64,000 bases of DNA from Botryllus schlosseri (taxonomy: Eukaryota). The translations under genes were made by a program, and so were the position numbers. The stretch covers positions 2,232,001-2,296,000 of the forward strand of contig CM119386.1 of NCBI GenBank assembly GCA_051294905.1. Direction: 5' to 3'. The first letter of the stretch is position 1. The number at the start of each line of letters is the position of its first letter. The notes under the pieces were generated by a model that had not been told where the DNA came from, did not search any database, and saw only the letters and a list, made by a program, of their open reading frames with translations. Positions 10,901 through 43,900 of this stretch are shown here, in pieces.

Positions 10901-13900
10901 TATAGAGTATTTTTTGAAAATTTATGCAGCTTTTTCAAAAAATTTTCGCGCCGGGCGCGATTTCTGGTTGCCAGACTTCTTGATTATTGGGTACTCTTCA
11001 CCTAAGAAAAAATACGCAAGGTTTATAGAAATGGGCATATCGGCGTTGGCCATTACCGCGCCACGTCACACCGAGATCTAAAGTTTTAGGTAATGTAACA
11101 TGCGACTCCAAGAGATGTGCCAGAACGATCGGCAGCGAGAAAACCTTGGCCGAAAAGTACTGCGCTTATGCCGATACATATAAGTGCATTTGTCCAATGT
11201 CCATAGGCGCCTAAATGACTGGCGCCGAATGTTCCTGTCTTGGCAATCTGAACCTCACAAGACAAATAACATCCCACACGAGAAAATTTATATGCCAGTG
11301 AAGAAATACCAATTTCAAATCGTGTGCGTGTTAGTACGTTTATGCGATTGATATTGCGGAGGTCACGAAATAACATCATGTAACGAAGTCATACCACCGG
11401 GTCCGCCCGCCCGAAGATGTTTAATTATTATTTACGGGCCTTACAGTTTCCAAGAGACCTCACTCAGCTCTACCGGTAAATCTGATTACGCGAGCAGAGA
11501 GGACAAGAAATTGATGGCAATATATATGCAATTCTCGATCTTATTGACCGATTTTATTATGAATCATTGAAAATTTTTGCGCGTGGCGCGTGCTTACTAA
11601 ATAATACTACTAATTACGTGGTAAAAGCGAACAACGTGATAGAGGGGGGAGAGTCGGTTTATCACCCTATGGGATCCCAAGACCCAAGTTCTTAAGGGGC
11701 CTGACGAAGTACTGTTTCGTTCCTTCCTACAGATATGTTTAATTATTATTATTGATGAGTGGTCCTACCTTTTCAAACACACCTCACTCCGCTCTACCAG
11801 TAAATCTTAATACGTGAGCAGAGAGAGGATAAAAATTGATAGCAATATATATGCAATAGTCGATCATATTGACCGACTCAATCATTAATTATAAAAAATC
11901 TTTACGCTTCGCGGGGCTAGACAAGACAGTGTTACACAGAGTTAATCCAGATGATAAATAGCGGAAATAGCGTAGAGGCTGAGGGCGGTTTATCACCCTA
12001 TGGGGGGCCCGAGACCAACGTTTTGGGGGGGGGGCCTGACGAAGTGCTGTTACAGCCCTGGGTGTTTGCAGACTTGGACAACTAGATAATTCTAGTTGTC
12101 AATTTCACTAAATTACAGCAAAATGCCAGTAATCTAGTTATAATCTAATTTATGAGATGTTTCTATGCTCTAAGTTAAATGTTTCTATACTCTAATTTTG
12201 ATTCTAATCTAATTTACTGTTTTCCTGAAAATGCCTCTTTGTCCGTGGCATTTTGCAGTGAGTTTCGCGCAGAGAAATCGGGTGCCAAGCCGCCATCAAA
12301 ATACTTACGGTGATATTGTGACAAATAATAGCCATGTTAGGATAGTAGCTTGTAGTCTGTGAACAGCCTTCTAGTTTCGATCACAAACATACCAGCAACA
12401 AAGAAAAAAAGATAGTTAATACAAGCTTGTTCACTTTCATGCCCTCAACTACATCAAGAAAAAAGAGGATAATTGCTTCAGATCTAAGCAGAGGAAAATA
12501 TTCTGAGACGATGAAGTGGAAAGATATTTCGCAGCAGAGCGTGAGAGCCTGGACTGTGATGCTTTGAGTTGTTGGAAAAGAGAAAATCGCTTTCCTCATC
12601 TCAAGGCTTTCAGCCATGCAAGAGAAATGTATAATGCAGGGGTCGCTATTCGCCAACTCAAAACGCATTACAGGTCACTTTTCAAATTTCGTAGAGGTCG
12701 CGGGCCCAAGAATGCAATATCGGGATAAGATAGGCCACACAGTTGAGCAACCACGTTTTTAAAATTTTACGTTAGTACAACGCCGTGCTCACTAACATAG
12801 TCGGTGGGCATGGTTTCCACAAAAGAAGTAATATTTTATTGAAGTACAAAACGAGCCAAGCTTGGTGTACAGACGTTAACCATTCTCTTGGGTATCGGAA
12901 TGCACTGTGATTAGATATGAACCAAACTTGATTTAGCTGTATTTCTTTCTCATTCTCAATTTCTTTCAATATCCAAGTTTTTGCAAATTCAGTAATTCTA
13001 ATTATGATATAATTTGAAATACACTGTGTGGTGTGGTGTGGTGTAATTCTAATTCTAATCTAATATGGAAGAGCTGAAAATTTTTTAGTTGTCCAAGTCT
13101 GGCTGTAGGAGATGTTCCTTCATCAATTTACTGCGCAAATGTGTTTGTAGTGGCCGTACATGTTACCTTTTGATGTAGCTGACAGGTAAAATCGTCCATG
13201 TAAACTAGTGCTTTTGTCGAGAATATCACAAGATGTTTTGGGCATTTGGAAATACGGAAAAGGACAAAATTCCAATCAATGACACGACGACACATATCAA
13301 TCATTGTGCAGAGACGAGAAATGGCGTCGTGATGTCAGAGTCCTTCCTAACCAGTGCAAAAATGGAGCGACTGCTTTGAACCATCATTTTCAAAATCCGA
13401 ATCCGATTCAGAAACTGATTACATCCTTCTTATTCAGGAACTTGCTCGAACGACCGCAACGACGACTTTGAAACTAGTCACGAGAACAGTACAGATGACA
13501 AAGATGAGTTTGGCAACAGCTGGCTTCATAATAAGACACAAGACAATTGCTTGCCTTGCAAAGAGTCCAAGAAACCAGAGTGCATGACATGCGACCAGCT
13601 TAGAAAGTAAGAAACATTGCCCATTTGATTTGGGAGTTTCTGGTGTTTATGACAAAGTTCTCGAAAAATCATCTGCCTTGTCTTAGTAACATTTCGGGGC
13701 ACTGGAGTTAGTACTGATTTTTGATGTTGCATCAATCAATATCTTCACTGGTCTCGGTAGTTCAGTCTATACGTTCAATTTTCCATTTCATGAAACGATG
13801 ATTTTGCTTGACACGGGCACTAAATGGTTTGTTCTAAATCTGGCCCCATTGGATTAAGCGCTGCATATTCCAACTGCAGTAATGGTGTCTGTCTTCTCAA

Positions 13901-16900
13901 ATTAAATTCAGTATTCTAGCTATGATTCTCTGTACATAATGTGTAAATGTGATTAATAGTGTATAATGTATTTGTAGGTAGAGGCATACCATTATTTCTT
14001 TGATTGGTTAACATATCATCCTGGTTTAGCTATTTAAAGTAACAGCAGATCCTCTCTCATGAAAGGTATATTGCTGTATATGAGGGATCTGGCATTCCAT
14101 AGTTATCAGTTGTCTGTGTCATTAGTTTTAACGAATTCATATGCCTGTATCACACACAGCTCAGCAACCATTAACATGGTTTTGCTGAAGACCCAGTAAA
14201 CATGCATATTTCAGTCATATATTTTTGTAACATCAGTCTCTGTATTTCAAATCTGATGTGTATAGTCACCTGATGGTCACTTGCGAATTTAGTTTTGCGA
14301 ATTGCAAGCAAATTATGTGTTTTCAGAACTGGGCAAGAACTGCCAGAAAGATGCACAAGGTGCACCGACGATAAGCCATGTGAGGAATTGCGGAACGCGA
14401 TCTTGAACAAGACTTGCACAATTAAACCGGATAAATTTGAAAGAAGCTGCCATTTTGATCAAAACAATGACAAAAAAGTGAGTTCATGTTTTACAGTAGC
14501 CCATGAATCGTGCATATCAGGTGAATTTATGTATGCCTTATACTGTTATACACAACAATCTTCTGTCCAGTTCATCCTATATTAATGTAAACCCAGATCT
14601 TGCGTTGACTGTGATCATCAAGTTATAGATTTTGTTATGTGATCTGTGTACAGTAGTCGTCAGACTGGTAGCACATATTTCTAGTAAACTTTTTCAAATG
14701 TTTGATTATCGAGTATCAGTTGCTCATGTAAGATGTTTCAATAGGCCTACTTCATGTTGTGCTTAAAATTCTGTTTAGCATTAGTTAGTACTGTGGATTA
14801 TGTTTGTTTCCTTCCATATTTATAAAAGTGATGTGACTTCACTCAAAATTTTAAAGCATGATCTGATTGTTTTAAATTGAAGTTTCTACCACCGGTATGG
14901 AATTTATACCGAGATTTCACTGCAAATACTCTGTATGACGCTATGATATGTATTGGATGGCCCACAACTCTTTACCCTAAAAAGCTGTCTCATATATCTA
15001 AAAGGAAGGAAGAGTGGGTCACCATATGAGCTGTTACCACTTCCAAATCACGCTCTGGCAAACTTCAAGGTCCAAATGTTACAGTTGTTCACCATGGTTG
15101 AACAAAAATATGTTTGTATTCGGTTGCTGATGAATCTTGTATTTATGCTTTATAGCTAGTTAACAGCGATGTCGTATGTTCACGAAAAATAATTTTACAG
15201 TGTTCTGTTTGTACGACCCCCTCCTTTGTTGAATATGCGGAAAATTGCGGAAAATGTGTGAAATGGCGAACAGCATTCAACTGCAGTAAGTATTCAAAAT
15301 AGCCATCTGATCATGGTATCTGTATCTGTAAGGTCTTCAATTTCACAGCTTAGCAATATAATTTGAATGATTGATACACTATATTCACACACTATATCTC
15401 ACATTTTCACATTTTCCAAAGCTCCAAATGGTTAACCAATCCACATGTGCTGAATTAGCATGTGATCTTCCTAAATTTCGACACCTAATGAAATTTTACA
15501 ATGGATTTTGTATTACCCGAATTTTAAGATTTCGAACTCAATTCGAGGGAGTGAGTTATTCAACATAAAGTAATTGGGAAATTGCCTTATTCTCGCTAGA
15601 AATCTGTCTAAAACAAGATTATCGCATTGAGAACATATTTTGTCATTTCAAGTACGAAAAGGATTGAATGAAAAGTTCACAAATTTAACGAAAATTGGAT
15701 GAGAGAGAGAGAGAGAAAGCTTGTATAAAGCTTGAATACTTTAATTTAAGAAATATTAATCACCAATTTTCTTCTACCAGTTTTTTTTTTTTTTGTAACT
15801 TCACATTAATGAGTAGGTACATTTAAATAATGCTCTCCTCTAGATTGTTAAAACTAGAATTAAAATTCATTAGTTTTACTACATGAAACCTTGGAACATA
15901 GCTGTTCCACCGATCTCAAGGGTAAATAATAGTTGAATCGTTGATAATTTCCAGCATGTGAATGACTTGTGCCAAGAGTTCCTGTTTCAAATAGAATGTT
16001 TTTTGTGAGACCTGACCTATCTCCTGATGTATAGGTGACGTGACGTAGTTTCATGAATTTTGCAGCTCCCACATGTGCAAAGGGTCAGATTTTCAAGGAA
16101 TGTGTCACCGAATGCGATGTGGCGAGAACATGCGCAAATAGAAATACTCTCGGAGAATGTGCAGACTTAGATGCAAACGGATGTAGCTGTCCCAGTGGAA
16201 TGATTTTCCTCGATGAAAATAAAGAAAAATGCGTGGAAGAGAGATGTGAGTTTGAAAATAGGTATTAATATATTTCAGGTATTTTGCAGAAGAAGATATT
16301 TACGCACCCTGGAAACACACCATGGATCGTTTTATGTGACCCTCTTGACTTTTGCATATTATATTAGTACCAATTGGTGGGAGTCATACAAAATTTAGAA
16401 ACGAAATTTCGATAAATTTTTGACCGAATTCAATCTAGTGAACAGATTGGATTTGAGTTCAATCGGTTACAGAACCAGAATCTAGAATTTGCCATATGAT
16501 GGTGATATAATCCTAATCGCCAAAAGTCCAACTCAATATAATAAAAATAAATATACCACCAAAATCTGGTTTTAAGTTTCTTTTGGCAGATTATTTCATA
16601 TTATTTGTAAGGTTGCGACTGCCCCACACCAAAGTGTGAGGAATACCAAGAAGCCGTGCCAAAACCAGGTCAAACCTCGGAAGACTGCTGCGCTGAGAAA
16701 ATCTGTCAATGTAAAGAAGACAATGTAACTTGCGCCTCACCCAAAGTACCAAGTCTGACAGATAAGGGCACTCCTGGATGTAACCACACTATCTGCATAT
16801 GTCCTACTGTTCCGGTATGTCCTACTGTGGACACGGATATCAATTGCGCATCTCCAGGGTGTGGGGTCACAGGTATAAGATTGGATTGATGTGATAAACC

Positions 16901-19900
16901 GAATGTCTGTATCACTATTATAAGTAGCCTATATATTTAGCATATTATTTAAACCACCGAGAAACTTATTCAAAATGGGACATCTATGTAATTAAAATGC
17001 GGTATTATGTCTGAAGGCTCACATAATTACTACATAGCATTGCGATATATGTTATATTTTTTGTAGGATACTACATGTTCATGACCGGTTTCAGTTTAAG
17101 GACCGATCTTGCAAATACTGACATGACAGAATACTGAAAGTATCATTGTGTTATGGATTCTGAATGGAGGCTAACGATGGCCACTGTATAAAGTCATTGA
17201 AATTTAATGATTTATTATTTGTTAATACACATTTAGCATACTCCTTCTGATATGTTGCATGCCAAATGCTTCTTGAAAAAACAAAACTAATACTATTTCT
17301 GGTGTTGTTAGAGAAAATCGGCGATTGCGGATGCACAGCGGAAGCAGTTTGTAGATGCAATGAGGCGTTGTGCCCCACTCTGCCAACATGCGACAGATGC
17401 CACAAGCTGGAAACGTCATATCCCACCAAAAATGACAGTCAACCCTGTGGCGGGAATTGTTGTCCAGTCGGCCGTTGTGTCCCCAAAACATGCCCACCGG
17501 ATACGGCAACGCCAAAAAATTATACTGCGGAATGCCCGTTTTTAGAGGTAATTTGATTTTGATGCATGCGTCCCATTGCAAATATGTTTTTCCCAGGGAT
17601 ATACAGATATCCCTGGTTTTTCCAATCCATTATCCTACCTTTTGATACAACATTAATTTATCTCCTGGCCACTTTACAATTCATGTGTCATATTGTAGGC
17701 TCCTCCAATGAAATAACATTTAGTTATGAACATTTAAGTTATCAAACATACTATTCTGCTTTCATGAATACCGAGAACTATTCAATATTACAATAACCTG
17801 CATGTAACATGCACCTATTTCATAGGCTCGCACAATTTTGCCTTGAAGTGACCTGCAATGATATAATTTACGAGACACAAGGTTCTAGTAGTTGTGCAGT
17901 CTACCTGAATTCTTTAAAAATGATTGAAATTTACTGATGCTATGTGTAAGAGGCAGACAGCCCAAGGTTATGTGAGAAGAGAGGGAGATTGTGGTTTTGA
18001 CTCTGACCTATTCCAGATATGCTAACTCTTTTCCGCATTTCTCCAAAGCAGCATTATATATTCTTTCTCAGGATAAAGGAGAATCTTATGACAAGGATGA
18101 CACAGAAAAGTGTTGTCCAAAACAATACAGTCCGGTTTGCGTCAAAAATAAATGTGACGTGTTCAATACTCCGTCCGAGTGTGAGCCAGGATACGAGATC
18201 CAACAAGTAAAGGTCAACGAAACGTCAAACACCAAAGTATCACTATATCGAAACTGCCCAATGGTTGACGAATGCTGCAAATACAAGGAGTGTGTGTGTA
18301 TATCATGTACGGATGGGTCAGGAAGACTTCTCTTAGGAGAGGAACGTTTGGATGAAAATGGGTGAGAGATCAAAGAATGCTGTTATCGGATAGGAAATAT
18401 TTGGTTCCTGTGTGTAAATAATAAATTTTTGTCCTTCTCTGTTTTTCATTTGAGATTCCACATCTGTTTTTAAGATTCCATAAATCAGATTATTCAATTG
18501 GTAATGCCTATTGAATCAGGCAGAAATACCTGATCAGCACAATACCGCAAAAACATTGCGTTATACGAGACTCAAAAGTTGGAAACTTCAAGCGATCCCC
18601 AATATCATTGATCAGCGCAGCAATGTGTTGTATCACGACTATTCTTAACAAATATCAGCCTGTATACCATGCAATTCTAATATCAAATTTCTCATCGCTT
18701 CAACAGTTGCAAGAGGATCAGTTGTCAGGCTGGTGTCCGAGGGGAGGATGGATGCTACCAAGTAACGGAACGTAAGCCAACATGTCCAGATCCTCCCATA
18801 TGCGACTGTAACCAAAGACTGAAAAAGACGCTGCCCACTGGCGGCGCCACTGACGTCAGCCAATGGTTATCACTGTGCTGCCCACGATACACGTACGTTT
18901 CTCCTCCATTGAATGCTCTCGGTTCACTTCAATTTTCTCGGCTTCAACACTTGCAGGTGTGAAGATTTGCCCTGTCCGGACGGATATCCTTCTGGTCCAA
19001 GCGCGTGCACTGCCCCATCCAAAAGAACTGTTGAATATTTGGTCAGTGGTTGTAACTTTGCCGCCTTGATTTCCGTGCCGATTATTTGCTCGATTTTAGG
19101 ACATTGATGGATGCGTCTATCCGAAGTGCGCAAAGGCCACTTGTAAGTGTGACCTGTGCATCGACGAGGACAATGTCACCCACGCCATCGGCACAGTATT
19201 TCCGGGAAGTGATAAATGTGACGAGTACACCTGTGTCAGAGGTAAGATGGCTTGATACATTCACAAACCAGACTTTTGATTGTAGTACTGTATTATGAAC
19301 GTTTGACCTCAATTGAAGGTCATGCATCTCAGCTCTTTTATGCAACCTAGTTTCTTGAAACCGGATTGCTGATCTAATCTATACGTTATTCACGCAATTT
19401 AAGATCTGGGTGTGTAAAATAATTTATGATGAAAATGAGAGGCCATTGGCACCGAATTTTGTGTGGATATGCAAAATCATGTGACGTCACAATCCCTCCT
19501 TATTAATGATGTCATAGAAACACTAGAATGCACTTTACTGCATGCCTCTGGTGTGCATACAGTGTTAAAACACACATGTGACGTTTTAATACCAGCCCTG
19601 CACTCAAGCCATAGAGTTAGTGTAGGAATTCCTGTATTCAATATTCTGCCAAATCACAAATAACGTTCCGTTTATGCCGGCTTGGTCCGATAATACCTAG
19701 ACCAAGCAACATTTTCCATGATTTCTTTCAGCGGAGGGTGCCGAGTGTCCACATTTGAAAATCACTCGCCAGGAATGCAGCCCAATATTGTGCCAAACTG
19801 ATTTTGAGGAATTGAAATCAGAGAAAGACCCGACCAAGTGTTGCCCGGATCAGGAATGTATCTGCAAGGTGATGCAAAATTTAGAGCTGCTGTTTTTTCG

Positions 19901-22900
19901 CTTGGGATATCGCACTTTGTATTGCGAACATTTCCACTAAAAGCTTTCCGACTGACTCTTATCAGTACATGTACCATTGTACAGGCAATACAATCAATCA
20001 AAATAAAAATACAGGAAATATTTTGTATAAGTTTATATGTATATGTTCTGTACCTCAAATGCATGGGATAAATTTCCATAAATATAAATTCAAATGCAAT
20101 CGAGTCGCGGTCACAAAATATGTACTTCTAGGCAGTATAGTACCTGAATCTAACAGAGAACGGTTTGCAAATTGCACTTTTCCAGCAGTTTTAACCATTC
20201 TAGAAATTGTTGCTTTTTGTGATGAGAGAATATTTGGTACACATTGCTTTCATATTGACTTTTCCCCTTCTGCTACAGATGGTGTGGCCGTGTGGTTAAA
20301 ATTGCTACTTCGACTAGTAATTGAGTATATATGTGTGATATTAATCGTATATATAATTGATGATTATTACAGATACTGTGACCCATTACGATATGTGGTC
20401 ATTTATGGATTACACCTGAATATTTAGGGACATTTTCGAAAATTCTTAACCAAAATCCTTCTGTCACACATTGTAACTAATCTTTCTCAGCCTGAGAACA
20501 TGCTCAAGGAAGTTTGCGATGACTATAAAAATGACACATCTACGTGCGACGACCCATCAAATATGATGCTGGAGGATACCGGGAAATATTTCAAGAATAA
20601 ATGTTGTCCCGAGAAGCAATGCGTTTGCAAGCCTGAAAGTCAGCTGGTGTGCGAAACCAAGTATGTATCTCAGTTTATTGCTAGATTGAGCCAAGGTCGT
20701 GGAAATACAAATTTTGGTAGTTCACTTCTTTCTGCTGGCAAAAAATGGGATTATATCGTTTGTTATTCATCTTGTCCCGCACTCACATCGTAAGCAATAA
20801 AAACAAATAAATTCGCATCACCTGTTATAGGAAATATTTTGCTTACGTATATGTTGAATGTTACTGTCCCTCAGATAGACCTATTTAAACCAGTATTGGG
20901 AGATTTTTATGAGTCATATTTATCATATCCATTATTCATATGCAGAAGTAAGTTTATATTCATATATATGTAACTCTCCTTGCATATATATTGAATTATC
21001 TAGATTGGTGTTGGTGTTTCATTTGAAACAATATTACTAATTTAAACAAGTTAAACTGCTCGGAATGTTTTAATTCGAATGTGCCAGCACATATGTTGCA
21101 GGTTTGACGCCTTCTTCCAAAATAAGAACAAGGCTAAAAAGCAAACTGTCGTAAACAATTGAGAAACACTGTGATCAAGTGATGTAATGATGTAAATTTA
21201 AATATGTCATCTCATTGGAAAGCAGGATATTACACGAACACCTTTCTGCATTAGGTATTAAAATCACTCTTCGGGATAGATACGGAATGTACCCAGAGCA
21301 AGTTCTCTACGTTTTTATTGACCATTGACTTTTTTTCCAGAACTTGTGACGAAAATTATGATTTGGTAAAGACAAGTAACACCAGTAGGACAAAGTGTTG
21401 TGCCGATTATGAGTGTGTGTGCAACTGTGCCAAAAAGACATGCAAGTACGAGACCTGGGTGGTCAAAAAGTAAGAACAATATAACATACCTGTAATGTTG
21501 CATTGAGGAGTTTCTATTCAGCCAAATTTATGGCTGTGTGATCGGTAATATTATTGAGAGCCTATGACTTCGCTTTCATTTTAAGCATGTATAAAGTTAT
21601 CAAAGTATAGGCTAATTCATTCTCTATCCAATAAGAAAATTTGAGCTTCGACCTACATTGGGCATATCTCTGTCATACTATCAGCGCACTTAGTTGAATT
21701 CACTCTTCTGCTAATGCCATGGCTCTTACAGGAAAATGCGTAAGTATAATTGTGTTTGTCAACTGTTTTGGCAACAACAATAACTCTCAAAATATCGAAT
21801 TTTTTCATAATTAGCTTGGTAAATATTTTATTCCTGTATCCAGTATTCAAAATATAATTTTTAGGAACATAAGATAAGATAAATTATAAGACAGGACGCT
21901 AGCTTAACAATGTATACTCCAAAACATGAAGGGCAGTGGTAGACCCTGGAAATCCGGTGTAGCAGTATTATGTTAACAGCAGCGTATATTACTTCATAAG
22001 CTATTGATATTACCAGCCACTACTAGCATCCATTCTTCGATATTATGAAAGTATCTAAATTTCTTTTTGTGGGACTTTGAATATACTAAAATTTATCATT
22101 ATACATTAGTATTAATTGCCAATTTACTCGTATTCATGCAATTATTTGTCAGTAATCAAGAGGGGTGTACCTGCGAATGCGAATGTGACAAAAACCTATG
22201 CGATACCCGAGAGCCTACGTGTCGACCTGGAGAGCACGTCGTACAGACAGGAAATAAAGATGACGGGTGTTGTCCAGTCTTTGAATGCGTGTGCAACACG
22301 ACCACTTGCCCTGCTATACCGACGGCAAACTGCAATGAATATCAAGTCGAGGTGATTTAAATATTTATCATATGAGATTTGGAAAAGCCATCACAGCCTC
22401 ATGTAGTCCCATTTATTGTGATCATTACAAGACGGTAAACATGCTATGGATTTTGGAATATCACAGACAAATTATGCTGCTTTAAATATACTGAATATGC
22501 TCTTAATCAAGTTCACCCAGAGGGCGTCAAAGTTATCAGCTTTGTCGCTCAATTAGTAGCAGAAGTAATTCTGTAAATATATATTATTTACCAGTAGAGG
22601 TAGAGATTTCAAAGAAAGAAGGATATGTAGGTCTGTGAAGTACGCAAGCAGTTATAAAAAGGATTTTGGCAGATGGACCACATATTTTTAGCAGGTATTC
22701 AGAATTGGTGACCTTGGAAATTGCGAGCTGCACCTTCGTGAATAACTTCAAACAGCCAATGATACTGCAAATAGATGCAATTTTCAAAAAATATATTCAG
22801 TCACTATGATCCCAAGGCTCTTTCGCTCATAGTTGTCACGACAATTCAACTGACGCAATCACGCAAACATATCTCAAAACTACTTTCCACTTTACAAAAG

Positions 22901-25900
22901 GTTTAAAATTAAGTAGCTTTGTTTTAAAACTGGCGAGTAGAATTAGTCTGAAAGCATATCCCCTTGAATAAGTAGTACAAGAGCTAAAATCAACTGGTGT
23001 GCTTGGAAAAATTGAAGGTACTTGGGTACTGACCACCTCTTATTTCATCCAACTTCTTTTCTCAGTACCCATGGAAGGAATCAAGTGAGGATTGCTGCGC
23101 GGCTAAGAACAAGTGCAAATGCAATCCGAACTCGGAAGAATTGGCTCGATTGTGTAACACGACGCAGGGCACGATGCCCAGTAACTGCAGCCAAGGGTGG
23201 GAGCCGTACGTCGCGAGCGTCATGGCTTCTGAAGACGACACAATGTGCTGCGACATTCAGTGCAAGTGCGTCAGCTGTGAAATGGGGAATGGGACAACTG
23301 TGGAGGTGAGATGCTGTTTTCAGCAGTACTATTAGGAAACAAAACAAAATGTGATGAAATCTCCGTTCAACTTGATATGTTCAGTGTTCTTGGCTAATGT
23401 TAGGGTGCCGATTAGTGCCATTAGTTTGTCGCTATCATCGACCATTAACCCTTGTATAGACATATAGTTGAACATGACAGATGACTTCAAGGAGGACGAA
23501 TCTTGGATATTTTGATTATTTACATTTGATTCCCAGTTGCTATATATTACATTACAAAAACACCCATGAAATTAGATACATTTCACTAGTAAGTGGGGAA
23601 AACAAGGAGGTGACGAATTAAAAGTATCGATGAGATGAAAAATAATAAGATTTTCGAACATGGCACCCCATATAACACAAAACGGCATAAAATAAATGAG
23701 TTATAGAAAAATGCTGTTACACAGTGTTGGAAGAAATATCGGTATCGACCATTAAAGGTAAAAATGCGTGATATGCGTGACTTCACAAGTGTCAGAGATT
23801 CTTAATCGAAAACTGACAGGAATGGGACTTTATATATTTTGTCCGTGATGTTTTTGTGGCATATGCACCGACTCATGAAAGACATACACACGATCTGCAC
23901 TTATGCCCAGAAGCTCACAAACACTGGATATAAAACTGGGAGTGGTCTGAAAAATTGCCACTTCAGTTAGTCATACCAGTTGAGGAAAGATAGAGTAGTA
24001 CAGTTTTTGAAGCCGAGAATCTTAGAATTCAGATTTTTACAAGTGGAAAGTACTTCTTGGAAGTACAGAACTTCAATATAAAATTGAATAGCATATTCAT
24101 ATTGAAATGAACCTGAATATTTCCAGCTGACTCTCTTCACGGTTAATCGTCAGCAACTAGTTGAGAATTGGAAAGAACATTGTATATCAGCAATCATATC
24201 TCGAAATATGACGTCACCAGCATGAAATGAGATCTCGAATAAGAGAGCGTTCATGTGGAAAGTAGTATATGGATAGATTTGCATTTTTTATCATCTTACA
24301 ATTTTCAAACATGATCTACAACCATTCAATATCCTAATGAATTGATCATTTCATTGAATTTCTGAGATTTCTGTGACTTTCTGTAACTCCTTGAGTTGTT
24401 TTGACATGATTTGTATACCGTCTCTTCTACTTGCAATGGAATAGAAATTAGTGACAGTACATTTAATTAGGTATCAACAGTTACCACTTCGACCAGCACT
24501 ACTTGGCATCTCATGTAATTGAATTCCGGGACTCATGCCAGCATTTGTAATTTGTCTTGATTCAATATTTACAAAACTACCTAAATCGTTTCAGATTGGT
24601 GCCGCGTGGCAGGAGACGGTCGGTTGCAAGGTTATAAGCTACAGGTGTTCCGAAAAAGTATTGACAAACGGATGCCACGAGTTAGTCACTCAAGAACGGG
24701 ATGTACCGTGCGAGTATACATCACTGGGAGATTATGAGGACAAAAATTGTGCAGCAAACACATACGCGGTACAGGCTACGCCACAGGCAGGCTGCTGTCC
24801 GGAGTTCAAATGCGGTGAGACTGGTAGTGTTGGGTTGTGAAAAAATATTGGCTAGTAGCAAGGGCAAGCCCACTATTGATCATGTAGAATTATATGACGC
24901 ATCTTTGACTACAAATTCACTACTTTAAAACATTTCACAGTATTTTTTTTGTCATTTCAAACGCAGGGAAATACAAAAGTTGAGAGTTCGTTCTGGGAGT
25001 TTTTCTGCATCTCATTCATGATATTATTCAGGCAGTCAATTTGAACGGATTCGTGATTATAATTCGAAATACTCGGATGTAAGAAGACTTATTATGGTCT
25101 CGTTGTATGAATTTTGGTTGTTTTCTGGTGGAATATTTCATTTCAAAACCACTGCTTGTAATAAAGAAAGAGATTTATTTCGTCAACCCATGACGCCATA
25201 AAATAGAACACTTATAAATATCCAGTATTTGACAATGGTAATATTGGTAAGTAAAATAGAAGTGGAGGTATAATTATTGATTTGTAATGCTGTTCATATG
25301 AAAAACTATTCAAAAGTATGTTCAGGAGCATGTTAATTAATTGGATTTATATTCTCCTCAAACCTGGCACTTGCCAATGGTCAATGTAACTTTGAAAATC
25401 ACAGCCTTAGCTTCCTTAAATTCCTAGCTCTTTCAATTATCCTGATACTTGACGTACTAACCACACTAAACCACGTATTAATCGATTTCTTCCAGTTAAT
25501 TGTCCGACCAAGGACTGGTCTTGCAACTCTTATGCCGAGACCAGAATCGCCAACGCCTCAAATCCTCGTTGTCCCGGAGAATGCATATGTGCCAACCCGC
25601 TCGGGAAAGAGCAAAACGACTGGTGCTTGAAGGAAGCCGTGTGTGGCGGAAACGAAGTGTCCAGTCCGTTGGCAGCCTTGGAATCCGGCACTGTTCACGC
25701 GGACAAATGCTGTCCGCAGTACAAATGTGTCTGCGCGGAATGCCCGTCTTCAGTCGTGTCATTAGATGCTTTAACTCCGAACACAGACAATTGTGAGGTT
25801 GCAGTTGTCAGTCCTTCGGATGCGGATAAAAAATGTTGCCAGAATCACGAAATTCAGTGTGATGTGTCTTGCACTTGCCCAACGATAGATCTGAACTGCC

Positions 25901-28900
25901 AATCGGAAGAGGCGGCTTGCCTGCAAACTACAGGTGAGTGCCAACGAATATATAAACACTAATTTAAAGTAGCCATTTATTATCAGGGTTGTAAAAGTTC
26001 CAAGGTTCCCAGTCACAAGTCAATCTCACTTTTATAGTTTTGGCTTGAGTCAAGTCGAGACATTTTCAATCCCCCACCGAGTGCAGTCAGTCACTGTCCA
26101 AGTCAGTGAGCAGCGGGTCGAGTACGAGTCATAGTGTTGTGACATAGCGTTGTTGCTCGAGTCATGAGCAATGACTCAAGTACAAGTCGAGTCAGTTCAC
26201 AAATTGACTCGAGTCGAGTAGAATGTAGTCGTTTTATCCGTTTAAAAAATGACTCGAGTCAAGCTAAGTCACCAAAAATTAGTGACTCAAGCCGGACTCG
26301 AGTCGAGTCATGACCCGAGTCATTGCAACCCTGTTTATTATGCTACATAACTATTTTTCTTGCTCCTATTTTAGATTCCAATGTACGTTTTATGGAACAT
26401 TGAGTCTGAAAATTGTTTATTGTATGATCCGTGCTTATCAATTTTGACCTTATTTTTTTCTCTGCAAGTAGTGTGCCTGTCGTATATGTATTTGAATACT
26501 GCCTATGCACTCGATTTTAAATGGTATTGATATGTGGCTAGGCTCATTTGAACATGTAATGAGCTATTATATAACAGTTTTTTTCAATCACAATCTTCGC
26601 AAGTAACAAAATGTACTCTGTTTAAAGAATCAAAACTTCAAAATTTGGCTGTTGTACGAGCTTTTCTTGTATACCAGAAGTATGGTACTCCATCATTGCA
26701 TTGATCCAGCAGACTTGATAGCGCTTATCTATGGACTGAACTCATCGGTGAAATCTCTCGCCACCAAGCCCGATTTCAGCAGCAATAAACAAATTATGCT
26801 CATACTCATATTTGCAGTAATTGAGGTCCTTAACCTCGTCAGAGTGAAAAGAGAAGTCCGTACGCGGTTATTTTTTAATTATCACCTAACCAGTTGGACT
26901 GGCCTAATCGAGATGCTGAAAATGTTGTTGCAGTAGATTTTGAATCTTCAAATGCTCTTTGTCATGGAAAATTGTTCCAAAGTCGTTATTTGTGTATGTC
27001 CCGCATCAATCTATGAAGTATTTTTTACACCCAACATCAAGTTACGCCGACAAGAACAAGGCAATCATAACCATCGGATTTAGATTAAAATCTCCTAGCA
27101 ATATTTACTACTATCATTATACAAACACAGAAGCACATATGTTTGATGGTGGCATCGCATTTGCTGGATTCCCTAAGACGAAAACGTTTAATGGAGGATG
27201 TTATGATTTTATAAGACTGCGTGTTGTCCTGTCAACCTACAATTACGTTTACTCATCATAAAATGTGTTCACAATTTGAGGATCCCTAGTCCGTATAGAG
27301 ACAAAATTCCACAAAATCTTTTCCAGTATCAACGAATAAATGCAATTGCACGGTCAACGCCGAATGTAAATGTAATCCTGACCTCTGTCCGACCGTGACA
27401 TGCAGTGAATGCGAGATCATGGACGAGAGGGATCCTGTGGTGAATTCATTGGCACCGTGCTCTGGCAGCTGTTGCAAGATAAGAACGTGCATAAAAAAGC
27501 CTTGCCCGTCCGTAACGGTGCCGAACATACCGCCTCTGTGCCCTTTCCTCGAAAAGATAAGTAGCATTTTGTGAATGAAAATACCGAAGTAAATATAGGT
27601 GATAATTTTCGTTACCAGCACAACGAGGTATACGGCAACGATAAATGCTGCCCGGAAAGAATCGATCTCAAATGTACAACAAACACTTCCGATTGCCCGA
27701 TTTCAAGCCCGACTACGTGCGAACCTGGATATCAACTCGAGACTATCCGCGCTGCCGATTCTACTGACATGAGAGTGCGCATGGCTATGAACTGCCCGAT
27801 GGTGGACGAGTGCTGTCCGATTCGCGTATGCGTTTGCAAGTCCTGCGTTTATGAAGGAGGAAGGATGGACCTTGGCGCATCGCCTGTCACTTCACCGGAC
27901 GGGTAAGATTAGCGCAGTGATAGATAGATCATTTATTCAAATTGTTTCACACGGAAAACATGAAAATTTCAAATTATTCATCGGTATAGATAGGGAAGAC
28001 ATGATACGTCAATCCCTTCTCTGTAACACAAAGATTATTCGTTACCGGTTATCATTGCATTCATCACGGACTCTTCCTTGTATTGTTCCGCCGAAATGTC
28101 CTTGAATTCGCACTGCTTAGCAAAGGCACGGCGTTTCTGAACGTACTCAGACATGGTGTTCGAAGGCTGCTGATTCCTATTGTGGCTAACTCATGACCCG
28201 CATAGACAAGAGTCTTCTTTTTCACGTACAAGCCCTCAAGAAATTTCATCGCATCCGTAAACGTCGATTCTTCCTCAACCAGCGAAAAAGATCCAGACGA
28301 CAAGTACCCTGCCATTATACTGAACCTATCCATCTCTGAGTCGCCATCCCTTCTGGCAGCATCAAGGGAAACTTTAGATACGCCTTTATTACGCCCATCC
28401 AGTGCTTGAACGCCTGAACAGCATCATCATCCCTTGGCACAGCCTTTAACTTGGATACGCGAATGAGTGTCTAGTTCGACGCGATAGTAGATCTTTTCAG
28501 TTAATAAAATTCTGGTGACCTCTATTTCACAGAGTATCCAAGGCTTGTATTAACTGAAAACGTGCATTATACGCGACACAGCTAGGCCACCAACTATTAG
28601 GTACCAATAAATAAATTAGGAGGGAGACAATATACAGTGGAGAAGAAATGTTATCAAGTACTAATTCGTTAACTATGTAAAGGACGAGACAATCGCACAG
28701 ATCGATCTAGAACCTATGGCCATGTCCTGAACAATATCCTCTGCTTCTCATGCGGGGCTACGAAATATAATCGACTTGTTCTATACAAATCTATGTGATT
28801 AGACTCAAATAAAAATTTGTAGATTTGTAAGTTTGCTTGGAAAGATCTATCTGAGACTTGTTTTTACCTGTTAATGAAACACATTTCGATGTGCATATTG

Positions 28901-31900
28901 ATGTGTAACATTATTTTTTATGATGCCTGAATGTTTCATCGGAAGTTGGATCAGTTCAAAAACATGGGCTCCAGTTTGCCTATATAAACTAATTTGTCCT
29001 AAAATATTAGTCATCAGACATGCTTGAAACCGATCATGATCAAAATTATGTGGTTTGATGTGATGTATATGCATGTGCATTGTCCATGTATTAAATAGAT
29101 AAATTCCTTTATCAGCTGTTCCAAATACACCTGCAATCAGGAGCAGAAACGTGATGATGGTTGCTATAACGTCACTGTCCAACACCCCGAGTGTGTGCCT
29201 CCGCCACCTACTGAATGCTACCAGTCAGTTACTACTGAGAGGCCATCTGGCGCATGTTGTGACAATCATCAGTAAGTAGCCGAAGTGTGCAATCAATAAT
29301 CGATCAAATAATTTTACCATCGTTTTCATCTATAGGGTACAGAATAACCCCTGTAGCTCGAGCTACAATCCAGGACCAAGCAACTGTACTTACCCGGCAA
29401 AACGTGAAGTTACATCTGAACAGGTTGGCGAGAATCTATTTTGCAACAGTCAAAACTGTATTCCAAATTAAAATAAATACACACACTTAAAATAAAACAC
29501 TAGTTATCTTACAAGTTATGGAAACATGAATACTTGAACATTTGTGAATCGGATGCTACAGTAATATAATGTATGGTAATGCTAATATATCTTTTATTAT
29601 TAGGATGGAAGCGGGTGTGCTAATCCGAATTGCCCAATCGCGAAATGTGTATGTACCGCGTGTCTGGATTCGAATAACGTTACTCACTCTATCGGCTCGG
29701 AATATACTGCCGAAAACGGGTGTGACATCTACACTTGTTTGGAAGGTAAATCAAAAGGTAAACAAATTGCTTGATTCATGTAAATATCAGAGGATTGCAA
29801 TCTAATTCTCATCGTGATGAACTAAAAGACCTTCTTGTTGACTTGTAGTTACCTACCTTTATGGCAATCTCAGAAATAAACTTTTTAAATAAACCCTTTC
29901 AGAACGTTATTATATCGTGCTGCAACTTTGAATTCACCCCTGCACCGAATTGCTACAGAGGTGTGGCCTGTTCTACGGCCCTAGATGCTGCATGCCAGCC
30001 TGGGTTCTTCTGATGCTCTTTAAATCCTTAATCCAATTGAAGTTACAATATGGCATCCTGTGTTGGGGGGAGGGGCTGCCAGTAAAACCGCACTTGAGCT
30101 ACTGCAAAAACTACAACATAATGTACTCTGTTCCTTATCATAGCTAGGGCCCCAAAGGGGCCTGGTTGTCCATCCAAGTTGTTGCTGAAGAGATCCGACA
30201 GTAGACCAGCATGTCCACATTCAAATCGAAATATAAGCAATTTGTATTAAATTAATACCGGTCCGTCCTCAAGATTACCGGACCACTACCTGACCTATCG
30301 ATCTCACCTTCCCTAACATGCCACATCATTTTTGTCGCTTGCTTTTCTATATTATCTTTTACTTTTCGTTCAGTGTGGATGCCTCCTCTTTATATCGCCT
30401 AGGCTAAGGTGGGAGTCTGATTTTAAAGACTACTCCTTACTATCTATCGCGATTTTTGTGGTGTATTGAACTGATAAAATTGCTAATAAATCGAACCGAA
30501 GGTAATATATATCAATATGTTTCAGTTCAGAGAATAAAGCAATAAGATAGTAAGAGACAAAGTGACACTGTAATGGTATCAATAAATCATATATCTTAGA
30601 ACAGTGATACATGATCCGTCGCTGCAAATCCAGCTAATTCATGAAATGTTTGCGATTATTTACAAACAGCTTGTATAATCATGAAACTTTCCCCAATTGC
30701 GTAGAAGCGTCGTCATTCATGAAGCTCGTAACTTTAGTACTCCATCTGTTTCTAAAATGAGAGTTAACCAGTGACTGTACGCTGTCTGTATTAAAATATC
30801 AAATATGCAATATCATAGTTTTTTAAATCATCAAGCATTTTTTGACTAATTCTACTGGAATCTACTGAATAAATACTAGAGATCGAGTTTACTGGACCAC
30901 ACTCTTGCCTTTCATTCCATGCCACCACATTCTGTCGCTTGTCCTTTTATCTTATCTTCTACAACTTTTCATAAAGTGTTCATACGTTTACTATACATAG
31001 CCTAGGCCCAAGTAGTTGTCTGATTTCTCCTTCTCCAAGTCGTTTCGACACCTTCCTATCTTTTCATTGTATCGGAAGCATATGGTGTGACAATTTGATG
31101 AAACTTTTATTAATAAACTGAACTAAACTGAAGTGAATTCCCAATGCTCTAAAGCACTGATGCCATACTACAACAAAAATACTGCTATCCATGTTTGGAT
31201 TAAGTCACTACCTTCGAGTCACGAGTCATCTCGAGTCATTGCACATTTTGACTGGAGTCAAGTTGAGTCAATCGATTTTCGAAGGTGACTCGAGTCAAGT
31301 CAACTCACGATTCAAGTCAAAATGAATTTTCGAAGTACGAGTGATGATGCAAAGTCATTACATTTTGCTGGGTGAGAGACAGATTAATTGGCCATTTATT
31401 TGGAATCAAATAACGTATATAACTGCTAATAAAATAAGTGAGTAACTGGACAGCTACATGCCACATTCTGTTATTATCAGCTAAAATACTGGATCGAATA
31501 CGAACCCTCGAGAAGTTGCAACTAAACAAATTCATATGGTACAATACACTACCCATCTTCACATCCGGGAGAATGGAACGCATAAACTATATCTGTTCGA
31601 TTTAAATTATACAGGAGGGTTAGTAAAGGTGAGGACTGCGCAATGTAAGCTCTGAGCCATCTAAGAAACAAAGGCGCGTTGCTATTAGATTAATCAACTA
31701 CTACCATGACAATGCACGCTGTGATCATTTCGTACCCGGTCAACTTATTTGTGATGTAACAATGGAGGATCAGTAAGAGGTGCAATCAGTGAATGACTGG
31801 CTGCTCTCGCAAGTGACATTTCGCGAACAATCCGAACATACATAAGGTATGGTGATTTAATCGACACCATTTACTTGATGAGTTGAAATTGACTCTTAAA

Positions 31901-34900
31901 TTTTGCTCCGAGTCATGAGTCAATCATCATTTGTGAAGCGCTGAGTGAAGTCAAGTAATTTCTCAAGTAATTGCTCAGTTTCCAGTTTAAGTCTTGGTAA
32001 ACACCCTTTATATAACTCTGTTTAGTGATATCAAATGGTTCGCATTTATAATATACGAATTTCCCTCACTTTTAGCACGTTCTGGTCGCATTTTCAATTA
32101 CCTGTACCAATAGACGAAATCCCAATAGTGTGGTTACTTTACTGTTCTTCGAAATTATAATGAAATGTCTGTCTTGGCCGTGTGAGTCTCGAGTCATATA
32201 GCTTGGTTTGAGTCATGCGTAATGACTCGATTCCAAGTCGAGTCAATACACAAATTGACTCCAGTGAAGTCATTTCCGTATTTTGAGAAAATGACTTGAG
32301 TCAAGAAGAGTCATCAGAAAATCGTGACTCGAGTCATTTTACAACCCTGTTCAAAATAGTACATTTTCTGTTAATTCTCTCTTTACAGGTATCCAATTTT
32401 TTCTCTTAACCTGAACAAAAAACATGTGTTCTCAAACCTGAATTCGTTAATACTTATGTGCATTTCTCAAGCTTATTTGCTGCACCGTTCCCCGAACTGT
32501 TGATTTTTGTACTCAGATTCAAATGCTGGATGTGCAGTACCGACATCGGACAGGCGGTATTGCGTCACCACACCTATACCTCGGAAGATCTGTGAAAAAG
32601 TAGGATGTTGTTATGATGGAACTGCACCGATGAATGCACGCTGCTACTTATATGTCGGTAAGATTTCATTTGGACTATGCATTGTGAATTGTGTCGATTT
32701 ATACAATATTTTGTGGCTATCGAGTTAGTCACATGCAGTGTTTTCTCTTCAGCAAGCAAGTTACTGCGAACAAAACATATATATTACGGTTGTTACAACA
32801 CAATTATACTTTCCTCTGAGCTTGTAAGTGTAAGTGAGCATTTTACAATATCGAAGAACTACCGTCCTGTTTTACCATTAGTGACATGTGCATGGCTGGG
32901 AAACAATAGTTTTCCCAAAATTGAGGCCTTCCATGGTATCGAAAATCTTTGTGGCATTGTTTCACAATTGGAAGTAACACAATGACACGGTGTTAGCAGA
33001 ATATCTTACTACAATCATTCTCGCATCGACTTTTCAGAAGCAACATTTGATACAATCAACGTCCGAGTGGTGTAAATTTCATGATTAGCTCAACTTATTT
33101 TACTTTCAGAACCAGCAGAGACATGTCCCATTCTTGTAAAAAAGGAATCTTCTTGCCCTACACCCTCTTGCAACGCACAGTTTGAGGTGCTGAAAGAAGT
33201 TCCTGTTGCTGGAGAATGCTGTCCCAACCGTACTTGCATATGCAAGGTATGTTTTGTGTTAAATTTGGAATTTGAGTAGCCAGTCAAAAATTAATGCAGC
33301 AAGCTGGGTCACAATTAACTCTTTCCTTCTATAGATTGTTCATGGTTACTCACATTACTGCGACACTGATATCCAGTTTGTTGTGGTGCACATCAATGTA
33401 ATCAGCAGTTAAAAGCTACAACAACTTTGCAAAACTATTACGTTATTTACCCTTAGATGAATTTAGATTGTTTATCTCTAAATGTGAATTTTGTCAACTT
33501 GTGAACTACCACCACGACCTCCGACCCTTGCTGAGCTGTGTATTGTTTGGAGCCGATTTTTTTTTATTTAGGCTATTAACTAACAAATATTGCAAATGTG
33601 AGCTATTTTCACACCCGGCCCATCATTTTACTTGATGTTAAAGAAATCAGAACCAGATTCATTGCATTTCAAAATAACTCGACTATAATAGCAGTCTTGA
33701 TTCCCAACATTTAGACCGATGAAATGTTGAAAGAAGTTTGCGACAACTATCGGAACGATACGAGCTCATGTGCAGACCCTGGAAACATGGTACTGAGACC
33801 GAATGGTAAATTTGTTGATCATCAGTGCTGTCCGCAAAAGGATTGCGTCTGCAAAGAAAAGGACCAAATAAGATGCCAACGAAAGTATGATACCTAGAGC
33901 GTTTTTTTTTTGTCAAAAAAGGGAAAATTTGGACCTGAAAAATCAAAATTTTGTCTTTTTTGACATAAACAAACTGAATTTTGACCTAATTTCGACTTAA
34001 CGTATGCAAATTAGGTGTTTTCCCACATAATGTTAAAATTATACCACTTATCTTAATTTCTGATTGGAACTGGCTGAGTAGTTTTGTCTGAAAAAAAGTT
34101 TTTGGCTTAGAAGCAGGCAACTTTTTACATGAAAAAAACAATATTTTAACAAAGTCTAATACCATGAAGAATTCCAGTGGTTACAATATGTATTATGGTG
34201 TAAATAATTTTAAAAAATTGCAGTACAACGAGAGACACTTTCCTACATTCTTGGGTAGAAAGTGCATGTCCATCTAAGAAGCTTGCCAAGGACGTTCAAC
34301 AGCAGCAGTTGTCGGCTCAGTTGTTGCTTCATTCCAACAATGTTGTCTACATCACAATTTTTCATCACGCGCTTCTTATATAAGAATGATGCAATGCCCA
34401 AGTAGTCTTTCTTCAGTTAGGATATTGCGGTACGTTGACCATAACACCATGTCTACCTATTTGTTTTATTTGATTTGTTTATGATTCACAATGGGCAGAC
34501 AATTAACCGTTTGCAACGGTAAGCCTATAAAGTAGGCTATAAGCTGTAAAATATCAAATGATAAGTTCACCGACAGTGCGAAATCTATGTTACAAACGAA
34601 ATGCAGACGTCAAATAGATTTTGACTTCATGAAAAATTTTGACAAATTTTGACCTAATGCTACAATTTTGGCAAAATTTTGACAAATTTTGACATGTCAA
34701 AAAATAACCGCGCTAATGATAACATATTTGTTTTGCTATGTCGATCCCACGATATTGGTTTCTCTAGGAAGTAGCTTATCATTAAATACTGCTGCGGTTT
34801 TGGAGTATGAGCAAGGTTTCTAGTCGGGAGTAGATTGGAATACTATTATAAAATTAACTTATCAATCGTGCATGTAGGTTGATAATAACACTATAATAGA

Positions 34901-40900: not shown

Positions 40901-43900
40901 TTTGTATCAGAATTAAGTCATGGTTTTGATGGGATGCACATAACTTGTGTAATTTGTAGCTTTGAACACTGGATGTGGCTAGAATCACCTCTCCATGACC
41001 AACGACAGTATACTGAAACTATAAAAAAGGAAGTTTCCCTTTGTGTACAACCATTATACAATATCTATATACACATCGTCAATGATCATCCACTGTAGCA
41101 AAGCTATCTTTAAATCACTTGGCCTTCACTCGTACTCGGTTAACTACAAAAGAGTTAGAAACAAGTAGTCTAATGCCTTTGTATTGCGATTCCATTCTTC
41201 TACAGGTTTTAATGTAAACGGTTTCAAAGCTGCACGGGCCTCGGCGAGTGCCTGATGGTATTCAATAAAAGTATATATAATTAGGAAGCAACACAATCCT
41301 TAGACACGGAATGATCCTATTCGGCACCATAAAATTCTACATCCACATCAAAATCTGACCATACTGTATAAAAACCGAACCAGCATAAAATGGCAAAACA
41401 AAGACACGGTTGTTTTCTTCGCAAATTTACCATCTCTCTAATTCCAGAATTGCTGTAGTGCCGCAGACGGTAACAATATTCTGCTTTCAGCGAAAGCCAA
41501 CAAATGCAACTGTCCAGTAGAGGCGACGTGTTCCTGCAATGTTGAGGCGTGTCCGGAGGTGACTTGTGGCAGATGCCAAGTGAAGACCAGCACTGACCTT
41601 CCTTTCGATTCCGGCTCGCAATGCGGGGGAAATTGCTGCCCCAATGTCACATGCCAGCCGAAGACTTGCACGCCTGTTGACGACATCTCCATTCCTTCGC
41701 AATGCACCTTTCTGAAACAGATAAGTCTTACATATTTATGACTGTCCGATGTCAGTGATTATAGGCATTGGTTTTGGACTCTGCAAGCCGTGGTTCAAAT
41801 TGGTTCTTTTACTGTTTGCTGAATTCGTTATATCTTTTGACTACTTCCATTTATACGTGACAGATATATTGGCAAGACTACATAATTTTTGCTCCATGGA
41901 TTTTATCAAGTAGAAAGTGGATTTGGGATATGCACGCACCACTTTTATGAGTGATATGCTCACGACGTCTGGGCGAAAGAACCCCGGAATCTGGCAGTCA
42001 GTTTTTATTCATATTTTCATCATTTCAAAACATCAAAAGACTGCGATACAATGAAAAGATAGGAAGGTGTCGAAACAACTCGGATTAGCTTTTAAGTTCA
42101 GACACCCACTTTAGCCTAGGCGAAGTAAAGAAGAGGCATGCACACTGAATGAAAGGTAATGCAGAGAATATAAGACGCAAGCGACAAAATGAGGTGGAAT
42201 GTGTCAGAGGGCGAGGTCGACGTTAGGTCGTGGTCCGGTAATCCTGAATGCTGGCTAGTATTCATTTAGAAGAAATTGCTTGTATTTCAACTTGAATGCG
42301 GACATGCTCGACGACGGTAGGATAGCCGGCGAGATGCTGTTCCAAAATAACTGATAACTGAGTACATTTTCGAAAATTGCCTCCATTTTCAGATGCATTG
42401 GTTGTTTTGTGTTAGCCGCGAAGACGCACCCTACAATTTCGAAAGTCTCCGATTAACTGCTAAAATACAAAATCTACCGTACTGCTAATTACATGAAAAC
42501 TTTTTAAATTTTCCGCTGCTATTTGGAGTAGATTTGACTTGTCTTTGAAACTACTAGGCCTACTATTTTAACCACCCCTGCTCAATAGGTCTGTTCAACA
42601 ATACCTTTTTTGTCAAATTTTACTGGCTACCTGAGAAAATTGTTATTTTGCCTAAAAAAACGCTGCACACCAATTTTGGCTCAACTCAAACCTACAGAAG
42701 CATTGCTATATGAGAAAATCTTAGTAATTAGTTATTAAAAATTCATCTAAAATTTTTATAAATTTTACTGGCTACCCATGAAATGGTTAGGTTGTATGAA
42801 AAAATGATTCACAACAAAATTGACTCAATTCGAACCCGTAGAAGCGAAGCTATTAACATTTGGGATTTCAAATTATCGTATTTACGGTGGGTAGATCTAT
42901 GAGAAGAAGAATTTGCCGCCGTAAATACTCTTTTTTTCCAATCCAAAGTTTTGTATTCCAATAACTTTGCTTCTACTGGTTGGAATTGTGCCAAATTTGT
43001 TGTGCATAGTATTTTCAAGCCACCTAACAATTTCATGGGGTAGCCGGTAAAATTTGAAAAAAATTTATATTTATTTTCATTGGATAAATCCAAAACTATT
43101 TTCTTATATAGTAACGGTTCTATAGGTTAGGATTGAGCCGAAATATTGTGCAGGGCTTTTATTAGGCAACATATCAATTTTGTCAAGTAGCCAGTGAAAT
43201 TCGAAAAAAATGTCATTGAAACACTATTCCTATTACCAATGCAGCGTGCAAAACACATCAAATTGTTTTCAGCACACTGAGATATTCACCAAAGAGGACA
43301 AGTGCTGCCCATCACGTAAATTACTTGCCTGCGACGGCAATTGCCCGGACAATATGGAGCAGACGAATTGCAGTGAAGGCTACGACCTGAACACGGCCAA
43401 CCCCACAGACTCTCCTGATTCTGCCGTACGGGCAATCGCGGATTGCCCGAAAGTGAAGACATGTTGCCCGCACACGATTTGCATTTGCAAATCTTGCGAG
43501 TACGAAAACGGGAAAAGGCTTCGACTGGGGAGCAGTGTTTTGTCCGAAAATGGGTAACAATTAATCTCTCACATTTTTTACCGATTGAGTAGTTTGTAAG
43601 AAGCCTGGTGAATGTCACAGAGATGTCATAAATTGTTGTCAAGATTGAGAAATAGGTTGAATTAGCAGTGAATAAGTACTGTGACCGCAGTACTCTAATA
43701 CAGTGGTTCTCAACCTTTTTGACCTTGCTGACCGGGAAAACTTCTAAACACATGTTGCGGACCGGGGAACCTTAAATACTTCAAATTTAACCCAGTATAT
43801 ACTTGCGATAAATGTATGCAACTCAAACGCAATTACTAAAGACTTTGAGTAAGGCTGCTTTTCTGATATTAGACACGTTATAAGCGTTATACTCGGCTCT

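Follow-up and report, generated by a model that had tools for sequence, protein, structure and literature searches.

We identify in Botryllus schlosseri a 65-nucleotide (nt) intron with AT-AC ends that is spliced out of transcripts from three independent studies and whose removal most likely depends on the major (U1/U2) spliceosome. The intron lies in unit 2 of a plus-strand multi-exon gene built from a super-repeat of about 13 kb, which occurs in four copies within the window (the whole 64,000-nt stretch of DNA analysed here). We estimate at roughly 0.8 the probability that this segment is a genuine spliceosomal AT-AC intron of the type known as 'AT-AC II'. A sequence-only reading of the window had drawn attention to paralogous introns in units 2, 3 and 4 that begin AAG/ATAAGT, CAG/ATAAGT and CAG/ATAAGT, respectively, and that all end in CAGCAC. 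The letters read as claimed, and the coordinates and lengths were exact (Table 1); in unit 2 the donor ATAAGT occupies 27557–27562 and the terminal CAGCAC 27616–27621.

Table 1. Exons and introns at the AT-AC position and its paralogues (positions in the window; a slash marks the exon–intron boundary)
Feature	Positions	Strand	Features and basis
Unit 1 paralogous intron, 524 nt, canonical GT-AG	17548–18071	+	GAG/GTAATT ... TCTCAG/GAT
Unit 2 exon before the AT-AC intron	27327–27556	+	Cys-rich, ends ...CPFLEK, phase 0; open frame
Unit 2 AT-AC intron, 65 nt	27557–27621	+	AT..AC joint in X2, X5 and X12; gaaaag/ATAAGT at 27557, ...ttaccagcac/aac with 27621 the last intron base
Unit 2 exon after the intron	27622–27902	+	27556/27622 joint; open frame over six spliced exons
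Unit 3 paralogous exon	41491–41720	+	Ends ...CTFLKQ; tblastn and alignment; canonical AG acceptor
Unit 3 predicted AT-AC intron, 1,555 nt	41721–43275	+	CAG/ATAAGT ... TTTCAGCAC/ACT; aaacag/ATAAGT at 41721, ...tttcagcac ending at 43275; sequence and paralogy
Unit 3 exon after the intron	43276–43554	+	Homology; GT donor at 43555
Unit 4 paralogous exon	54430–54659	+	Ends ...CTHLEQ; homology
Unit 4 predicted AT-AC intron, 1,068 nt	54660–55727	+	CAG/ATAAGT ... TTTCAGCAC/AAA; gaacag/ATAAGT at 54660, ...tttcagcac ending at 55727; sequence and paralogy
Unit 4 exon after the intron	55728–56005	+	Homology; GT donor at 56006

Four runs, each of a different study, were mapped to positions 24900–30800. Contigs of three independent studies (runs X2, X5 and X12) join 27556 directly to 27622, skipping 65 nt with AT..AC ends, at a joint with one ambiguous base (A on both sides, making TA..CA formally equal). 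This is the AAG/AAC junction that the sequence-only reading had named as diagnostic of AT-AC splicing. Support comes from two X2 contigs (depth 53), from X5 at depth 42.8 with a side of 134 nt, and from X12 at depth 24.5. One 603-nt X5 contig runs through 25695–25930, 27324–27556 and 27622–27755; it spans both this joint and the joint 25930/27324 (GT..AG once the cut is moved by +3), at which a 1,393-nt intron is removed, so the same molecule also bears an ordinary GT-AG splice. Five neighbouring introns are GT..AG on the plus strand (1,393, 1,213, 64 and 180 nt among the joints of the region), and six spliced exons form one open frame that reads ...CPFLEK and passes into the exon starting at 27622. 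Across 27320–27905, seven public runs from the same organism hold 0.83 of the sampled words, the value expected of exon-only RNA. Raw RNA run X24 has zero reads on the gene within 24900–30800. Three other ways of handling the donor were considered and rejected: a GT at 27512, in frame with CAG and put forward earlier as the donor whose use would overturn the AT reading, is unused in the mapped transcript contigs; use of the +5/+6 GT within ATAAGT would cause a frameshift; and A-to-I editing of the +1 base would yield GT-AC, which is no better a pair.

Retention of the 65-nt copy had been proposed as a length switch, and translation confirms that the unspliced frame reads ...FLEKISSIL-stop, truncating the protein before the later repeats. 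One X2 contig (27528–27651) indeed crosses the whole intron unspliced; its depth is 25, compared with 53 for the spliced contigs of that run. However, X2 also contains the unspliced 3′ part of the upstream intron (26998–27382, depth 34), which points to precursor or internally started RNA rather than to a specific switch, and X5 and X12 show the spliced form only. A stop codon far from the end of a gene normally triggers mRNA decay, as would be expected for this one. With a sole unspliced contig from a single run behind it, the switch is not upheld, and we regard regulated retention as unlikely.

The acceptor offers a second alternative, in which most transcripts, or a substantial share of them, are ligated at the AG three bases upstream and retain one His codon, AC being just one member of a tandem acceptor pair. 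CAG is conserved directly before AC in all three copies, the introns of units 2, 3 and 4 are phase 0, and AC and AG endings are both in frame. Yet the 65-nt joint is present and a 62-nt (AT-AG) joint absent in the contigs of X2, X5 and X12, evidence that consists of assembled contigs and so can mask rare variants such as low-level AT-AG use or retention. The ligation site shown in mature transcripts is AAG (27556) to AAC (27622), not the upstream AG; the His codon CAC at 27619–27621 is intronic, and the spliced mRNA reads ...FLEK/NEVY.... Substantial AT-AG splicing is accordingly quite improbable.

We favour AC ligation by the major spliceosome over removal of a minor-spliceosome (U12-type) intron with degenerated signals. 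In animals AT-AC ends are mostly U12-type, and the genome carries a U12 snRNA gene (101.9 bits), which makes the distinction between U2-type and U12-type introns meaningful here. Published work defines U2-type AT-AC introns by a 5′ splice site that follows the U2-type consensus except for A at +1 (PMC1557818) and stresses G at +5 in the known examples (PMC2831892). The donors AAG/ATAAGT (unit 2) and CAG/ATAAGT (units 3 and 4) fit the U2-type consensus except for A at +1, and have G at +5. They also fit U1: the U1 genes of the genome start ATACTTACCTG, and this end can pair with the donors everywhere except +1, covering eight of nine positions in units 3 and 4. By contrast, ATAAGT has only ATA in common with ATATCCTT, and the U12 donor ATATCC(TT) has no match within two mismatches at any of the three sites. 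The U12 branch box TCCTTAAC, expected about 10–20 nt upstream of the 3′ end, is absent within 60 nt of the three 3′ ends save for one two-mismatch match in unit 2, TCGTTACC, which at 5 nt from the 3′ end is too close; units 3 and 4 have none. Donors that pair with U1, in introns with neither a U12 donor nor a U12 branch box, are best read as U2-type AT-AC II. The earlier assignment to the U2 class thus stands as far as motifs carry it, and U1/U2 dependence of the unit 2 intron is inferred from these motifs; a degenerate U12-type intron is very unlikely. The U1 genes themselves form two large tandem arrays, one on contig C6 at about 6.91–6.95 Mb with a spacing of about 1.9 kb and one on contig C2 at about 28.76–28.90 Mb, with at least 42 copies above the Rfam cut-off.

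Junctions outside the canonical types frequently prove to be artefacts, and the types of the runs are unrecorded. Even so, template switching by reverse transcriptase, misassembly at the A and a deletion allele in the genome are already largely refuted as sources of the joint and barely credible. The sequence shared at the joint is 1 nt only, three studies show the joint at a depth matching that of the flanking exons, one contig carries it alongside a GT-AG splice, and the A is confirmed in an independent sample and three paralogues. The earlier caveat that the A at 27557 might be an assembly error is answered by the unspliced X2 contig, which has the same letter, shows zero differing letters over 27528–27651 and comes from a sample independent of the assembly. 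The joined 27556/27622 form is missing from the 495 Mb of genome DNA, and the unit exon has only four genomic copies, all within the window. On these grounds the joined form is a product of splicing and not of retrocopying or of a deletion allele.

Comparison among the units extends the AT-AC arrangement beyond unit 2. Units 2, 3 and 4 agree at each of the six donor bases and each of the six bases that end the intron (100% identity), whereas identity between units is 17–41% (random level) in intron positions +7 to +30 and −30 to −9, and 33–77% in flanking exon DNA. At the protein level, the units are about 44% identical to one another and 37–42% identical to unit 1, marginally the most distant. 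Identical termini around interiors at random level go beyond chance and, given the protein divergence, indicate that the termini have been held through long divergence. The motif AGATAAGT occurs four times in the 64 kb, three of them at the paralogous exon ends. In unit 1 the paralogous GT-AG intron sits one codon off the position in units 2–4. The pair of exons on either side of this position is bounded, in each of the four units, by GT-AG introns. That both ends had been kept through repeat duplication, as the sequence-only reading suggested, is borne out as DNA-level identity in units 2–4, with splicing seen for unit 2.

For unit 4 (54430–56005), runs of studies P3 and P4 hold 0.21–0.34 of the words, against 0.29 expected for exons alone and 0.75–0.82 held by DNA runs. 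The P3 and P4 share is close to the exons-alone value, from which it follows that the unit 4 exons are expressed without the intron; removal of the intron in these runs is thus indicated at the level of word shares. Searching protein fragments for what spliced unit 3 or unit 4 transcripts would encode gave no candidates, and exact-junction scans of a metagenome collection, run for both the AC and the AG ending of each of these units, gave no match. Unit 4 has on paper a weak in-frame GT-AG alternative (agt/GTCTTC to CAG), and no in-frame canonical alternative is common to several units. By paralogy, units 3 and 4 probably use AT-AC as well.

These features suggest how such an intron could be spliced. 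U1 would recognize the donor, as (C/A)AG/AUAAGU can pair with the U1 5′ end except at +1. At the second step, A at +1 would be unable to make the usual contact between the first base and a terminal G, but would be compatible with a terminal C, as in the suppression of G1A by a change of the last G to C in yeast and human introns. The acceptor would therefore shift to the nearest suitable AC, which lies three bases beyond the old AG. The arrangement AG/ATAAGT ... YCAGCAC/ in units 2–4 was probably inherited from one ancestral unit through tandem duplication of the super-repeat of about 13 kb.

How the arrangement arose is more speculative. A published proposal derives the known AT-AC II introns from U12-type AT-AC introns, as 'trapped' descendants (PMC2831892). 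Here the GT-AG paralogue in unit 1, the conserved CAG directly before AC and the AC that ends an in-frame His codon suggest a simpler path. We tentatively consider that an ordinary GT-AG intron may have become AT-AC by a single G-to-A change at +1; ligation would have moved from CAG to the in-frame AC, three bases downstream on the His codon, and the old AG would have been kept under selection, for example for recognition by U2AF. The 3′ site would thereby be split, with recognition at AG and ligation at AC. That the copies also share all three bases of the CAG is a hint that AG may still serve recognition. With four units and no outgroup the direction of change is unrootable, so the G-to-A origin is one that we infer. 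If true, it would provide a one-step route to U2-type AT-AC introns, with no need for a U12-type ancestor or for both ends to change at once.

The product of the host gene is a large, secreted repeat protein rich in cysteine, in which trefoil domains separate the units. Two trefoil (P-type) exons at 32504–32668 and 46740–46898 match PF00088 (31.9 and 28.9 bits, E values of 1e-7 and 1e-6), and Pfam scans of 15 exon or ORF pieces gave no family for the Cys-rich exons, only these inter-unit trefoil exons matching. The introns around the two trefoil exons are similar too (32460–33126 against 46689–47328). No annotated protein for the gene was found in very large protein collections. In a set of 1.8 billion representative proteins, the unit 2 exon has a single relative, P0001, an 86% identical, unspliced 113-amino-acid ORF from a Logan contig that forms a single-member cluster. 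P0001 reads ...SQH/KEVYGDDKCC at the junction position, and its Q-H would be compatible with the conserved CAGCAC. A 111-amino-acid ORF lies on the minus strand at 27286–27621, antisense to the Cys-rich exon, and an 89-amino-acid minus-strand gene call adjoins P0001 in its contig; most likely such antisense ORFs are not genes but follow from the codon make-up of the Cys-rich exon.

Further observations concern variation and transcription at the locus. Second-haplotype contigs from X2, X5 and X12 differ from the window at 5–6% of exon bases within 27418–27541, 27654–27696 and 27699–27903. Allelic divergence at the locus is very high, and P0001 may belong to the lineage of the second haplotype or to a still more distant one. 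X2 alone has contiguous unspliced RNA or DNA that extends across the exon's acceptor from roughly 330 nt before the exon, as well as over the 65-nt intron, whereas further into the upstream intron the depth is nil. That sample may contain a transcript that started internally or was only partly processed (precursor). A spliced-leader junction before 26998 in X2 was rejected, as the 12 'loose' letters resemble the genome and are allelic. Two intronic cores, 26011–26042 (32 nt) and 30452–30490 (39 nt), reach depths in the thousands in all runs. The raw RNA reads over these cores run on into unrelated sequence on both sides, and the two cores are mutually dissimilar; each is probably a piece of a dispersed repeat with high transcription. 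An Rfam scan of 24900–30800, which includes both cores, gave no match.

U2-type AT-AC introns account for about 1 in 10,000–30,000 introns of surveyed animals, and very few have been studied. Reported AT-AC II introns number 15 among about 186,000 in human, 6 in mouse and 3 in fly, while worm and Arabidopsis have none; 10 of the 15 human introns lie in paralogous sodium-channel genes (PMC1557818). For Ciona, the AT-AC total over both classes is 40 out of 113,879 introns (PMC2760879). The Botryllus locus brings together three natural copies (65 nt, 1.1 kb and 1.5 kb) and a GT-AG paralogue within one gene, a compact natural series for studying both the matching of first and last intron bases in exon ligation and the origin of such introns. 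Gene predictors restricted to GT/GC-AG would break or mis-frame the gene at three places.

The closest known counterparts are the U2-dependent AT-AC introns of the vertebrate sodium channel genes SCN4A and SCN5A, which are experimentally established (Wu & Krainer 1997, as cited in PMC1557818 and PMC6280755). Like these, the Botryllus introns combine AT-AC ends with A at +4, G at +5 and T at +6, have no U12 signals and have been multiplied by duplication. Unlike them, the Botryllus copies multiplied inside one gene through super-repeat duplication, their host is a lineage-restricted Cys-rich, trefoil-containing protein and not an ancient conserved gene, the locus retains a GT-AG paralogous copy, and the class is assigned from sequence. 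With U12-type AT-AC introns, the Botryllus introns share the terminal dinucleotides, in a genome that has the U12 snRNA gene, but not the characteristic donor and near-3′ branch box. A third comparison is with double mutants made in U2-type introns of yeast and human, G(+1)-to-A with G(last)-to-C, in which A at +1 is tolerated with a last C (refs 52–54 of PMC1557818). The same pairing of first and last bases is compatible with exon ligation in both settings; the mutants are laboratory suppressor pairs of reduced efficiency, whereas the Botryllus intron is natural, conserved and spliced this way in the main transcript form. As in NAGNAG-type tandem acceptors, two in-frame candidates (CAG and CAC) lie 3 nt apart and differ by one codon, the conserved AG preceding AC in the Botryllus copies, but here the second site is AC and only AC is seen in use. 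The unit 2 intron is thus a new, well-supported case of the rare but known AT-AC II class.
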